Positions 1,423 to 6,813 of a DNA stretch of 64,000 nucleotides are shown piece after piece. The stretch's first letter is position 1. Every line of letters starts with the position of its first letter. The notes beneath the pieces are model-generated. The model was given only the letters and a program-made list of their open reading frames with translations. It made no database searches and was not told the origin of the DNA. The stretch covers positions 1,178,001 through 1,242,000 of the forward strand of contig CDRNST010000354.1 of NCBI GenBank assembly GCA_977016875.1. Direction: 5' to 3'. This DNA comes from Pavona decussata (taxonomy: Eukaryota). The position numbers and the translations under genes are program-made.

Positions 1423-1530
1423 CATAGTCTTATCACCTTGCTAAAAATGTTAAGTTATTGATAGCTTTGTCAAAAGTACACCTTAGGACACCCGTATCTC
1501 GGGTTCTAAATCGGTTAAACCCTACTCTTC

Positions 1531-2743
1531 CAGGGTTTGAGCCAGGCCGTGCCATTGCGCCAATCCCGCACTGCAATTGAAATTGTCCCTTAAAAAAACA
1601 GCCTAAGGAACAATTTGTCCCCTTCAAAATTTAGGGAAAAAACTCGAAAGGAAGCAAACATGAAGGGATCCCAGAAATTGCAAGCCAAACAGAACGTGGA
1701 AACTATATTTTACTGCACGTTGTTCGTTCAAAGTTCATTCTCAAGTTACGTTTCACAACAGAAAGCTTTTTCGCTCCAAATTGAAGCCAGACTGAATCAG
1801 AGAAAAATGATACAGAAGAAGAACAGTGTATTAATCCGGATGAAACGGATGAGGTTCAAAGAAAACCGAAAAAAACTTGGTTGCGAGATCACACATGGTT
1901 GCCCTACGAAAAGGAGGCGTTCTGCTATTTTTGTCCGAAATCTAAGAAGACAACCCCTTTGTATCGGCAGAAGGGTGTACAAATTTTAGAACCTCAACTC
2001 TGCAAAGACATAAAGACTGTTAAGAACATGAGGATGCTGTTAATGAAGAAGCTATGAAGGATACATTCAGCAGCACACAGCGCCGTGTTCTTAGAGAACA
2101 ATCGCAAGCCATCCTCACAGCAATGAGAGCCCTCTACTGGCTGGCCAAGGAGGACATAGCCACACTCAAGTATGACTTACTATTCAATTTTCTGGATGAA
2201 GTTGGCCTCGAAAGTGTTAAGAATCTTCGAGTGGGAGGAAATGCTACCTATCATTCTCATCAAAGTGCGGAAAGTATGCGAGATGCTATTGTTACTGTTC
2301 CAAAGGCTAACATTGACAAACTAAGGTTAGGGACTTTGACTTTTCAACAGCCCTTGATGTTTGGGCTAGAACCAACAGAAGAATTAGTACATGTACATCT
2401 ACCAGTATTAAGAAAGGAATTGAAGTTTACAAGGGGATGCCGAGATGAGATTCTGCCGTGAAATATTTGAAGTATAAAGTATAGCCATTGATCCTCTGTT
2501 TAAATATGACGAGAAAAAAAGTCTTGACACCAATAACTTAACTTTTCTGGTTATGTATTGATCACTGTTCTTGTATTACAAGGATCAGCTAAAAAAATGT
2601 TTCTGTTGGCTTGCCTGTATCAATGTAAAAAAAAGTTGAATAAAAATTATTTTGTCTGTTCCCGTAAAAATAAAAATGTCCCCCAAAATTTTAGCCAAGG
2701 GGACAAATTGTCCCCCAGTGATCAAATCCTAGCTCAAACATTG
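1531..2743 (+). mobile_element. Internally deleted hAT element (ZNF862/ZMYM-type transposase: TTF-type Zn finger plus DUF4371-like segment)
   Basis: TIRs CAGGGTTTGAGCCAGG / CCTAGCTCAAACATTG; CTCTTC duplicated at 1525-1530 and 2744-2749. Frameshifted WLRDHTWL..FCYFC..TNFRTSTLQRH, and ORF 2054-2461 LYWLAKEDIATLKY..NATYHS. Confidence 0.8.
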
Positions 2744-2840
2744 CTCTTCTAAATTTAGAACAACGGGTACCGTCCACACTAAATTATCTTTTGTGCCAGC
2801 TTACATGACAAGGAATCCAATTATCGGGATGAAATTCAAA

Positions 2841-4275
2841 ATGGCGGACCTGGTTTATAAAAGCCAAAAATATCGATTTATCATTAAGCACTTCAAGCCC
2901 GTTTCATTTAAGGCAAAGTTCGTTTACCGCAGTGGTTTAAGGAGGCAAGACATTTCTTTGTCGCTAGAAAGCCGTACGATTGGAAACAGTTCGACAGCAT
3001 TGCCTGTGCCTGCAGTCGATCGCGAGATCAAGCACTGCACCAATGCATACCTGGCTGAAGATACAGATCATGCATCTGGCGATTTCCGGCATTCTGTAAG
3101 CGCCCACCAGAATCGCCGAATACAGGAAGAAATTAAGTGGAGTGAATTGAGGGAACGTCTTGTGAATACAGAGATCGAGAACTCATTTCTTCCTAATACT
3201 GCATGTGTTTGGTGCCACAAAACTGCGGCCGTGGCAAGGTGCACTTACTGCGGGCCTCAAATCTACTTGTGCCTCAACTGTTCTCAAAGGCTCCACGGAA
3301 GTATTAACACTTATCATGTGTTGGAACTATGGAAAGTAAGTTCCATTACAAAATTTTTATTAGCTTTTTTATATATACAATGCATGATTGTGATATAATC
3401 GTATAATCTCATTCAATTAATTAAAATACATAGATAAATAAATAAATGATTGTAATGACGGTCTTCTGTGCTGGAAACTGAATTATATCTTCCTCCTTAT
3501 TGGTACTTGTGAAGAAGTACATTGTAAATGCCATGGAAAAGGAGAAAAATACAAAGTGATCGACAGCTAACCCACTGTCTTTTTCATTACAGGATGGAAC
3601 GTTAGTTCCACTTTTTCCCAACCACGATGTTTTGGCCCGAGGTGACCACGAGTGCTCCTCAGGGGAAATTCGGATTGTACAGTGTATAGATAAACATGTT
3701 GAGCACAAATGTATTTATGCTTATTTGTTTATTTTACATGTTTTATGTTTGTGCAATGCCCTTATTATGATTATCCATGGTGTGCCAAAAATGTTGATAA
3801 TTTTGTTTCACTGTACTTGATTGTAAATGTAGTATCATTAATAATAGCTAGTGTATCAAACTGCTGCTTATATTGGCCCTGGACTTTATATATCTTCATA
3901 AGTGATTTTCATTCGTCTACATATACTTAGTGGGCTGGAAGAGCTAATACAGGATGGTTTTATAAGAGGCATGAAAAAGGTTACCGGTAAACAGTAAGTA
4001 TTGACAAACAAGTTTAAATAATATTATTTATAAGGACATTTTTTTAAACCTAGGAAACCATCATTCAAAGAAGATCCGTTTCTGCCAGTGCGAGCATCCA
4101 GCTGTCACCTTGGTATGACTACATCTGTGGCCTGGTTCACCGGACAGACCTACCACTGCCTTTCAGTTTAGGCTTATGGACCAGGTCACAGATACGTTTA
4201 TAAGCTGTAAAGTGTCTCTGATAGAGTTCACTGCTTTGCTTGAATTGAAAAGGCCACTTTTACAGCCATAGATTG
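2841..4275 (+). pseudogene. CxC2/CxC3-like cysteine-cluster N-terminus of a KDZ transposase (spliced, decayed)
   Basis: CVWC..RCTYCG..LCLNCSQRLH..YHVLELWK (gtaagt donor ~3336). Later exon from ~4054: FCQCEHPAVTLV*LHLWPGSPDRPTTAFQFRLMD..CKVSLIEF, matching the WPxxPxxPxTAF motif. Catalytic KDZ domain not seen. Confidence 0.7.
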
Positions 4276-4866
4276 TAAGTTCTTCACATGTAAATTACTC
4301 TTTGTTTAAAAATAAAGCCCGGATACAAAGTTTCAAATAAAGTGCAATTTTGTATAGGTAATTATTATATAATTATTATAGGCAAGGTACACCCTGTAAT
4401 TTTTTTTGATGAATTCCAGGGACAGAGCGATAGAACACCGACTTCAGGTGCAAGATTTCTTATATTCTACCTAGAAAGACGCAGTTCTATACGGACTGTA
4501 AGAAGGTTTCTTACGCGACTCTGCAGCATGTGAGTTCAAATTCGAGCATGACACACACGAGGATATTGTACAATCGTACTTACAACAAAGGAAACTTTGT
4601 ACTTTATCGATGCCAAAATACCAAATTTAAAAGAAAAGCTCTATAGCTTTCATTTATAATGTACAAATTACACTTTAACCGATACTTATGGTTATTTCTG
4701 TCGCAAAATTTCATTCCAAAGAGGTATGTACCCGGTATTCTCATTAGGTCTTCTAAATACAGTACAGAAATAACTTACTTCTTGCCCTAGTGGTAATTAA
4801 GAAGGAAGATTTGAACTGATTACCCTGTTTAAATAGGGGAACAAGACCAATGACTTGTAAGCTTAC

Positions 4867-5040
4867 CTCAACCTTATTCCTTGGAAGACGAGTTTCTTCA
4901 GCTGCATGGGTAATCATTTCATCATACTGGCGGCCAGTACCAATCATTCCACCATCATAATGTTGTTTAAGAATATTCTTTTGAATGTCGGTCAACATAT
5001 TGTAGGTTTGAGCGCACGGCTTACTCTTTTGACTTGCCAT
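4867..5040 (-). CDS. HDX-like (highly divergent homeobox) homeodomain exon inside the KDZ element
   Basis: 58 codons MASQ..LTDIQKNILKQHYDGGMIGTGRQYDEMITHAAEETRLPRNKVE, then a phase-0 GTAAGC donor. Resembles the HDX N-terminal homeodomain as I recall it (QQRILQRYYENGM..CAQETKL). The next exon was not found. Confidence 0.6.
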
Positions 5041-6813
5041 GTTTAAATGAGAATCACCGAAACAAAAAGGCAGATGATATTTCAATTCAGGTCAGATTAT
5101 GTTTGAACTGTTTCAACTTGATCGCGAGTTTGAAGTGAAGCTATTTCAAAATTTCAGGAGTGACGATGTCTCATTTCTGATTACGTAAAACTGATAAAAG
5201 AATTAAAGATTAAAATTACAACAACTGAGGACAAGAGTTTGTTTTTCTCTGATAAATCTCGCAAAAGCAAAATACAGTGATTCCATACTTTAATTGGTGG
5301 CTTTGCAAGTGTTGAGTTCGGGTTTACATCTTACTTTACATGAATCATGTGTAATTATTTGACTGGCATGACAATTTTAATAGCGGGACCTTTTCGCATC
5401 TAGTTTTAGTCTAGAATAGGCTCACAAAATTTAGCTGAATATGGTCTGGTATAGGGTGAAGTATCAGAGTCCCAGCTGCACACCCTTACCCAATAATACC
5501 ACCCCCCACCCATCCCCACCCTTCTGGATTTAATGCAACGTTTGCATCTTCAAGCATTCTTTATACATTTCAGCTACTAGTAAAGTAACTAGAATCTTGG
5601 GGATCTTACCGTATTTAGCGTAGGCTCGATAACTCGGAAAATGAGAAAGGTGGACTAGAGACGAGAGAGAGAGACGTAAATCGAACCTATATTTGGCTAT
5701 GCTGTTTTCATATTTATAAATGGCTCCCATTTTATTCTGGTGTTTTAGAAAGGTCTTGCCCAAAAGTAACTAACATGGGGTGTATAATGGGCCAGAAAAT
5801 AGACAATGGGGTAAGGAGTATGAGAGGTTAGCGGCATATACCCAGAAAAAAATCACCCAATTACCTCCGCTCTCCCCCCCCCCCCCTACCCAAACATTCA
5901 CCATGGATACATAACCTCCGACGCGGCACACACACAGACATTGATATTGATTTTAAAGGCTATTCTAATGACTATTTTCCTGTAGTTATAAACATATAAA
6001 GACTAGGAACCACTGCGAAAGCCCTCAAAATGTTAAGCTTGTGATATTGAGGTGATCAAGATTCAATTAGTGCACAAACATATCGTAGTTTAGTACGCTT
6101 CATTAGACCGTACCCAACTAGCCACTAAAGTAATTTAGGCAAAAGGCCAAAACGCTCGTCTTGGGCTTCTCTGCTGTAAGCGCTGAATAGATTCTCAGCA
6201 TTAGGTGCTGCAAAGGAGAGCAAAGAGTTGAATTCAAACACCAAACATGATTACAAATATTTTTTTCTGTCCGCCATTTTGGATTTCTTTTTCACATTTT
6301 TATATCTAAATGCTGATTGGTCAGCTTCCTCACAATGGTAGCAATTGTCATGTAAGCTGGCACAAAAGATAATTTAGTACGGACGGTACCCGTTGTTCTA
6401 AACTTAGAAGAGTAGGGTTTAACCCATTTAGAACCCGAGATACGGGGGCTGAGGAAGCTCCCAGGACCTCTAACTCTAGGCTTCCCATCACGGTTTTTTG
6501 TTAGATGTATTTTCTTCTCACAAAAATGTTACTCTGTGTTTGAACTGTCTTCAGCTGCAATGAGAAGTGCACCCAAGTATTGAGCAGCTTTTAGTGTGTT
6601 AGAATTACTTTAGTAATATTGTTTTGGTGGGTTGGCCAACAAATGGTTTTAATTTAGGTTAGTCATTCCACAAAATACCCGAAATTATATTGTCGAGACA
6701 ACATTCTCACACTTTCCAGTGACTCAATATGGATATTTTAATTAGAAAGCAAGGATAATACTCATATTTGGTAATGCAAGACACCTTCTAGCTATAATTT
6801 AATTTGTTTATAG

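Follow-up and report, generated by a model that had tools for sequence, protein, structure and literature searches.

Can a single transposon carry, beside its transposase, a homeobox gene that serves it, and could such a gene be kin to the vertebrate gene HDX? This question is raised by a stretch of 64,000 nucleotides from the stony coral Pavona decussata (contig CDRNST010000354.1, positions 1,178,001 to 1,242,000 of the forward strand, assembly GCA_977016875.1), hereafter the window. A first-pass annotation, made from the letters alone, had placed at 1489-6448 a KDZ-type transposon with an HDX-like homeobox exon running antisense to the transposase exons. Our analysis suggested that the window copy is in all likelihood a deletion derivative of a 17.9-kb two-gene Kyakuja-like element, the second gene of which (the partner gene) would aid transposition. 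The window locus itself is an ordinary relic, and its interest lies in the family to which it belongs and in the possible link to HDX.

The window copy and its long relatives

The genome search was made in the window's own assembly (602 Mb). Window segments 2750-4313 and 4330-6446 were found 13-30 kb apart at five other loci. Three of these five long copies were fetched, namely copy A (on contig C6, with L031 and L034 as stretches of it), copy B and copy C. Copy A is 17.9 kb long, and over 104 bp its two ends show 100% identity. Window 2744-4313 corresponds to positions 917-2500 of copy A, and window 4330-6450 to positions 16640-18756, with the junction of a 14.1-kb internal deletion between them. 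Copies A, B and C share about 98% identity among themselves and 92-94% with the window copy. Perfect target duplications were read at copy A (CTTCAGC) and copy B (ATCTCTT), while copy C was ambiguous; copies C107 and C525 are truncated at their outer ends, so that their target duplications are unreadable.

What is left in the window copy is the two ends, two transposase exons, both broken, and, of the partner gene, no more than exon 1. This copy is an old, dead, non-autonomous deletion derivative, which the nested insertion and a stop codon have damaged further and which can produce neither protein. The two-gene system claimed for it by the first-pass annotation is thus seen with its full plan in the five long copies but not in the window copy, because only partner exon 1 and no KDZ catalytic exon were kept there. 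The features of the window copy are as follows.

1482-1488, no strand: left target-site duplication CTTAGGA, paired with CTGAGGA on the right
1489-1530, plus strand: outer part of the left terminal inverted repeat (TIR), starting with CACCCGTATC; this terminus recurs in other copies and in other assemblies
1531-2743, no strand: nested non-autonomous transposon, foreign to the KDZ element, which splits the left TIR and is flanked by a CTCTTC duplication
2744-2811, plus strand: inner part of the left TIR with the palindrome TTCTAAATTTAGAA, 92% to 6345-6420
2793-3335, plus strand: remnant of the first coding exon of the transposase (Cys-rich N-terminus), with a GTAAGT donor at its end, 94% to copy A
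4005-4268, plus strand: remnant of a cysteine-cluster exon of CxC1/CxC2 type, with an in-frame TGA at 4116-4118
4313-4330, no strand: junction of the 14.1-kb internal deletion, in which the KDZ catalytic exons and partner exons 2-6 were lost
4867-5040, minus strand: partner exon 1, with the ATG and the predicted homeodomain positions up to 46; donor GTAAGC at 4861-4866
5041-6344, minus strand: 5' leader and presumed promoter of the partner gene; in copy A, contigs of the runs described below extend 100 nt or more 5' of the ATG
6345-6448, minus strand: right TIR, which ends with the reverse complement of the left start CACCCGTATC, one base being mutated
6449-6455, no strand: right target-site duplication CTGAGGA, 7 bp, with one mismatch to the left one

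The reading of 1489-6448 as a single KDZ element, bounded by TIRs and holding a convergent gene on the opposite strand, was confirmed within the 64-kb window, since its ends, its 7-bp duplications and its exons on both strands were all verified. The termini are CACCCG at 1489 and, at 6448, CGGGGG, a mutated form of the family's CGGGTG. The inverted ends extend over about 104 bp, and the left one is broken after 42 bp by the nested insertion; in the alignment with copy A, the repeat of the latter is uninterrupted. The inverted arms are 90% complementary at 1491-1540/6397-6446 and 92% at 2736-2811/6345-6420. In addition, the motif GTTCTAAAY has five sites in the window, four of which fall inside the element ends.

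The intact transposase gene, on the plus strand, is made up of several exons and encodes a Cys-rich N-terminus, a CxC1/2 cysteine cluster and the KDZ catalytic domain. In copy A, the KDZ domain (PF18758, L031:5225-5530) was matched at 2.7e-12 with 47.3 bits against a cut-off of 26.6, and the intact cluster, which lies N-terminal to it, matched CxC1 at 1.5e-11 and CxC2 at 3e-10 in Pfam. The catalytic exon is present in four long copies and is absent from the window, where it belongs to the deleted part. The cysteine exon of the window had been taken as KDZ-associated and CxC3-like. The association held, but the type did not: in Pfam the exon at 4005-4268 scored 3.2e-5 for CxC2, 1.5e-3 for CxC1 and 0.18 for CxC3, and is CxC1/2-like. 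Downstream of the KDZ domain, again on the plus strand, lies a 317-codon zinc-finger-like open reading frame (ORF); it has no start codon and is probably the final exon of the transposase. Rfam gave no match on the full copy.

Kyakuja elements are described with 7-bp duplications and CA..TG ends, and Zisupton and Dileera with duplications of 8 bp (PMC12730594). The termini CACCCG...CGGGTG and the 7-bp duplications of the coral elements are of this Kyakuja type. Assigned by duplication length and termini, the cut-and-paste elements of this stony-coral KDZ family are Kyakuja-like.

Several further sequences in and around these copies deserve mention. The nested transposon has short inverted ends (CAGGGTTTGAGCC.../...GCTCAAACATTG) and internal inverted repeats at 1607-1624 and 2697-2714; its family counts at least 25 full-length genomic copies at about 90% identity, and Pfam gave no match on the short ORFs of this 1.2-kb insertion. 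Window 5405-5518 and 5756-5891 are short dispersed repeats with dozens of genomic loci at 73-82% identity, and the segment between them that matches window 5523-5857 is missing from copy C. About 120 kb upstream of the window, at C354:1059037-1061267, lies another deletion derivative of the same KDZ family, which keeps the right end and part of the GTF2I-like exon with one TAA, and C354:1151599-1151750 is a solo end of that family. Finally, copy A 9474-11100 (L031:9474-10000 and L034:1-1100), a region that separates the zinc-finger-like ORF from the transposase ORFs, holds tandem repeats with periods of about 118 bp and about 500 bp, the number of units differing among copies A, B and C.

The partner gene and its recurrence

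The exon on the minus strand was found exactly as claimed: the window letters give 58 codons from ATG to GAG, directly followed by the phase-0 donor GTAAGC. In its intact form, the partner gene lies on the minus strand, convergent with the transposase gene, and consists of six coding exons with 1512 nt or 504 codons, each exon being open in the frame set by the preceding one. No stop interrupts any exon of copies A and B, and stops are present in copy C. The product was first thought of as a homeodomain protein only, which proved too narrow: a predicted atypical homeodomain is followed by an HMG box, then by a GTF2I-like repeat, and the C-terminal region is conserved as well. Exon 3 matched HMG_box_2 at 2.7e-5 (25.2 bits, cut-off 22.4). 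The first part of the HMG box is in exon 2, where a weak match to a UBF HMG box at an expectation value (E) of 1.1 was the sole match of that exon in the PDB; a 20-position profile of the exon 2 start found nothing there. The GTF2I-like repeat matched PF02946 at 4e-12 (46.7 bits, cut-off 27) over profile positions 7-74 of 75. Within one intron of the gene (L034:5126-5424) there is a long microsatellite with a 12-bp unit, the translation of which gives PTYL repeats in three frames.

Four sequencing runs, each of a different study and taken by guess to be RNA, supplied contigs which, when aligned with copy A, displayed five GT..AG joints on the minus strand. One contig of 343 nt joins the last base of exon 1 to an exon 1.16 kb downstream (7177|6017). 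Behind a good acceptor, this second exon starts with AAA TGG ATA GGC AAT GAA CGT, and the junction reads ..N-K-V-E | K-W-I-G-N-E-R-S-K-R-R... The helix-3 exon with xWxxN, which the first-pass annotation had expected but called missing, was thereby found. It belongs to the part deleted from the window, and within this genome none but the five long copies have it. That the runs are RNA is made more likely by the spliced contigs themselves. The contigs over intron 1 indicate that unspliced RNA or DNA was present in those runs. Alternative joints were also observed within L034:3500-7450, one skipping exon 4 (4620 to 5439) and one using a site internal to exon 3 (5557 to 5881).

Is the partner gene a constant part of the family? 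Exons 1, 2 and 6 occur in this genome only within this KDZ family, and exon 1 is kept in every copy that retains its region. A nested element of its own for exon 1 was considered and ruled out, since the exon is contiguous with the right end in each of these copies and has no termini of its own.

Beyond this genome, relatives of exon 1 were found as 13 protein clusters from other assemblies, with about 40-100% amino-acid identity, and in all of them conservation ends at the same donor. A word search for exon 1 relatives returned nine. No spliced or intronless protein with a whole homeodomain of this kind was seen when phmmer was run against 1.84 billion representatives, which gave 13 short ORFs, all reading into the intron. 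The partner gene recurs with its introns and with the end sequences in at least three other assemblies, one of them Desmophyllum pertusum. The loci of these relatives are L037 in D. pertusum, L038-L042 in two ENA assemblies and L073-L078 on short Logan and JGI contigs. They displayed the same exon order, an exon 2 starting KWIGNE[RK], the HMG exon, the GTF2I exon and the convergent zinc-finger-like ORF. The start motif of exon 2 is kept in L037, L038, L041 and L073/L078, with Lys at position 53 in L077. Furthermore, L041 and L042 also hold the KDZ N-terminal and CxC1 exons, the homologue of the Cys-rich N-terminal exon adjoining the partner gene in both. L042 closely resembles the window copy in being a deletion derivative, and no more than about 130 bp separate its exon 1 from the CxC1 exon. 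Between lineages the exons align and the introns do not. Conservation extends to the terminal sequence, with GGGTTCTAAATGGGTTAAACCC and the perfect palindrome among the conserved stretches, the latter in L038, L040 and L041.

The D. pertusum locus (L037, MU825926.1, 147324-168337) also illustrates how such a gene fares in annotation. NCBI splits it into two hypothetical proteins: KAJ7382368.1 (108 aa), the sole annotated model found in the search for a whole homeodomain, covers exons 1 and 2 out of frame with one base lost at the acceptor, and OS493_035427 (360 aa) covers the remainder. A Desmophyllum relative of the partner protein is annotated as GTF2IRD1 by NCBI, and the GTF2I family is precomputed on relatives. 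Just upstream of the L042 derivative, L042:4583-9157 encodes a 1156-residue protein-primed type B DNA polymerase (PF03175) and a fragment of a piggyBac-type transposase, and may be a Maverick/Polinton-like element.

A probable homeodomain, and the question of HDX

Taken together, exon 1 and the KWIGNER exon very probably encode a homeodomain, as judged from profile comparison, predicted structure and gene structure. All homeodomain comparisons were run exon by exon, on the unjoined exons. On profile comparison the homeodomain claim fared unevenly. Pfam Homeodomain (PF00046) had no match on exon 1, on the longer ORF or on exons 2 and 4. However, when a profile of exon 1 built from eight lineages was compared by hhalign with the PRD-class homeobox exons of this genome, it matched in the expected register with P 6.5e-4, and none of 300 column shuffles reached the score. 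The match to the ANTP-type homeodomains of the host had P 0.005-0.006, with two of 300 shuffles reaching the score. In the hhalign register, the last residue of exon 1 is homeodomain position 46, and a net insertion of four residues lies between helices 1 and 2.

The predicted fold agrees with this register. The AlphaFold model of exon 1, in which exon 2 is not included, has a predicted local distance difference test (pLDDT) score of 68 and helices at 18-29, 37-50 and 54-57; of the third helix only the beginning is present. The Foldseek list for this model was dominated by homeodomains. An all-against-all structure alignment with 48,161 chains likewise gave a top that was nearly all homeodomains (Z 4.1-5.2, root-mean-square deviation about 2 Å over 43-49 residues), and the end of exon 1 falls on position 46-47 of the aligned homeodomain chains. 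Read onward in this register, the start of exon 2 (positions 47-53) would supply Trp48, Asn51 and Arg53. The first-pass annotation had placed the phase-0 intron at the helix-3 site of PRD-class genes, and this was borne out: the intron of the partner gene falls between homeodomain codons 46 and 47, a gene structure of PRD-class type, and more than 40 homeobox loci of the host, PRD-class genes among them, are split at the same place.

Could the 58-codon exon instead be a chance frame or an unrelated fragment, with the homeodomain resemblance an artefact? In favour of such a reading are the missing Pfam match, the phmmer search of exon 1 against the PDB, which found nothing as a single sequence, and the ESM Atlas, where the one neighbour of exon 1, at 0.76, was noise. 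Yet exon 1 is conserved in 13 clusters with conservation stopping exactly at the donor, a contig splices it to the next exon, none of the 300 shuffles reached its score against the PRD-class exons, and the fold lists are dominated by homeodomains. A chance frame is already contradicted by these results, and we give it almost no credence. A J domain was also tried and rejected: the DnaJ match (E 0.011-0.017, residues 2-36) covers only a helix and a Gly-rich stretch and has no HPD region. The DnaJB resemblance of the exon-1 profile, to the end of a J domain and a Gly-rich linker, is a trap for automatic annotation and was judged to be chance.

For the homeodomain and the gene that holds it, several points must be set on the other side, and we count them as weighing against our interpretation. 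Besides the Pfam result, a hidden Markov model was built from 22 of the coral's own ANTP-type homeodomains, and when element, window and related loci were searched with it in six-frame translation, nothing rose above background. The AlphaFold model of the C-terminal exon, at pLDDT 38.8, was unusable. The run contigs give no transcript levels, some of them cover intron 1, and the runs are RNA by guess only. On the transposase side, the membership of the zinc-finger-like ORF in the transposase mRNA is putative.

Is this homeodomain related to HDX, as the first-pass annotation had it? HDX (highly divergent homeobox) is an orphan homeobox gene of vertebrates with two homeodomains; it is not known to have an HMG box or I-repeat or to lie in a transposon, and its helix 3 carries W-[IV]-G-N. 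The best sequence match of the exon-1 profile among homeodomains of the PDB was 2DA4_A, deposited under the title "homeobox domain of hypothetical protein DKFZp686K21156", which we take from the name of the clone to be human HDX. With the first profile, 2DA4_A was matched at E 0.0068 over 38 residues without a gap, and the ungapped alignment runs through a Y-x-x-G-M stretch and through the place at which canonical homeodomains align only with a gap of four residues. No other homeodomain chain of the PDB had an E below 0.1, and the 2DA4 identity of 24-28% was the highest or near-highest among the structural matches. With the trimmed profile, E for 2DA4 was 0.072, behind the spurious DnaJ match at 0.011, which is a further point against. 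The likeness to HDX therefore stands insofar as the nearest solved homeodomain is the chain that we assign to HDX, matched without a gap; its significance is borderline (E 0.007-0.07), and a DnaJ match scores alike. HDX is described as having an atypical homeodomain of 68 residues and no invertebrate orthologue (PMC2211742), and this homeodomain is longer and has unusual insertions (PMC2211742; PMC3371834). A specific affinity of the coral homeodomain to HDX, as judged from these sequence comparisons, is a matter of roughly even chances.

The homeodomain may also be real and not of HDX type, having diverged independently, perhaps from PRD-like ancestry, with the 2DA4 match arising by chance. 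This possibility must be taken seriously, although we lean somewhat away from it. The host PRD-class match is better than the ANTP-type match, the 46/47 intron is at the PRD place, and the trimmed profile ranks 2DA4 behind a spurious hit. Moreover, the partner architecture of one homeodomain, an HMG box and a GTF2I-like repeat differs from the HDX layout of two homeodomains. Against an independent origin, 2DA4 is the sole PDB homeodomain below E 0.1, at the identity given above and without a gap, and the homeodomain of HDX is likewise atypical and longer, with insertions.

A bolder proposal, that vertebrate HDX had its ancestor in the partner gene carried by a KDZ transposon of Kyakuja type, is in our judgement improbable, as is its extension that the partner might also be the source of the I-repeat of TFII-I. 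If it were true, the ancestor of these vertebrate transcription factors would have in the coral element a relative that is still mobile, and HDX would have arisen in a similar way to HMGXB3, which is reported to derive from a KDZ transposase.

Proposed role of the partner and comparison with known systems

What would a KDZ transposon gain from such a partner? A working model can be drawn from known two-protein transposons. First, the transposase would cut at the CA...TG ends and integrate with a 7-bp stagger. Second, the partner protein would act as an end-binding and architectural factor: its homeodomain and I-repeat may recognise conserved end motifs such as the palindrome TTCTAAATTTAGAA, and its HMG box may bend the DNA and help the transposase to pair and cut the ends in a paired-end complex. 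Third, deletion derivatives that keep their ends, like the window copy, could be mobilised in trans. This mechanism rests on analogy and on the conservation of end motifs, and both the binding by the partner and its role in transposition are predicted, which tells against the model.

The strongest competing view sees a passenger in the partner gene: an ancestral KDZ element would have picked up a host transcription-factor gene a single time, and the gene would be carried along as cargo with no part in transposition; in a variant, it might act on host chromatin or silencing. The partner's function being assigned by analogy leaves room for this, and KDZ elements do carry cargo such as TET/JBP dioxygenases (PMC12730594). 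Furthermore, other KDZ loci in this genome are without exons 1, 2 and 6, and the partner is therefore not universal to KDZ elements. Against mere cargo, position, orientation and introns of the gene are kept across lineages whose proteins are 40-75% identical, and only exons and end sequences are still alignable, which indicates selection within the element. In addition, exons 1, 2 and 6 have no host copy outside the family in this genome, and all recognised modules are DNA-binding ones, which fits an end-binding role. We thus regard cargo as unlikely, although by no means negligible, and prefer a partner that aids transposition.

KDZ transposons are poorly characterised in animals, and their known passengers are mostly TET/JBP enzymes of fungi. 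A literature search that paired KDZ with homeodomain, HMG or GTF2I brought up no account of a partner with homeodomain, HMG box and I-repeat, and a search for HMGXB3 with Zisupton found nothing relevant. The present family is a clean and conserved two-gene KDZ case with spliced run contigs, in which the partner stacks three predicted DNA-binding modules. It offers a conserved end palindrome together with the partner, and hence it is directly testable whether KDZ transposases need an end-binding helper. In this one mobile element, the predicted homeodomain, which has the spacing of HDX, stands beside an HMG box and a TFII-I repeat, and all three are domain types of vertebrate regulators whose origins are unclear.

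Two-gene KDZ elements have been described in fungi, with TET/JBP as the second gene (PMC12730594). The coral family shares with Kyakuja the KDZ domain after a CxC cluster, the 7-bp duplications, the CA...TG termini (as in Kyakuja-1_LB and Kyakuja-2_LB; PMC12730594) and the possession of a second gene. In contrast, it has inverted ends of 104 bp, which the described fungal Kyakuja elements do not have, its host is an animal, and its second gene encodes a multi-domain DNA-binding protein, as predicted, and not a TET/JBP dioxygenase; the likeness is drawn from ends and domains. With the TFII-I family (GTF2I, GTF2IRD1, GTF2IRD2), the partner shares the I-repeat, PF02946 being covered over 68 of its 75 positions. 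This likeness is at the level of the repeat, as the coral protein has a single repeat together with a homeodomain and an HMG box and is encoded inside a mobile element. With HDX it would share a homeodomain that is atypical and longer, the identity of 2DA4 with HDX being our assumption. HMGXB3 is said to derive from a Zisupton/KDZ-type transposase and to combine an HMG box with it, whereas the HMG box of the coral element is on a separate partner protein and not fused to the transposase.

The closest functional models, by analogy, are the two-protein systems En/Spm (CACTA), with TnpA and TnpD, and PIF/Harbinger, with a transposase and a Myb-like protein. In these, a separate protein, TnpA or the Myb-like protein, recognises the ends for the transposase; HMGB1 likewise helps RAG and Sleeping Beauty. 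The DNA-binding folds of the En/Spm and Harbinger proteins are unrelated to those of the coral partner. Furthermore, both En/Spm proteins come from one transcription unit, whereas the coral element holds two convergent genes on opposite strands.

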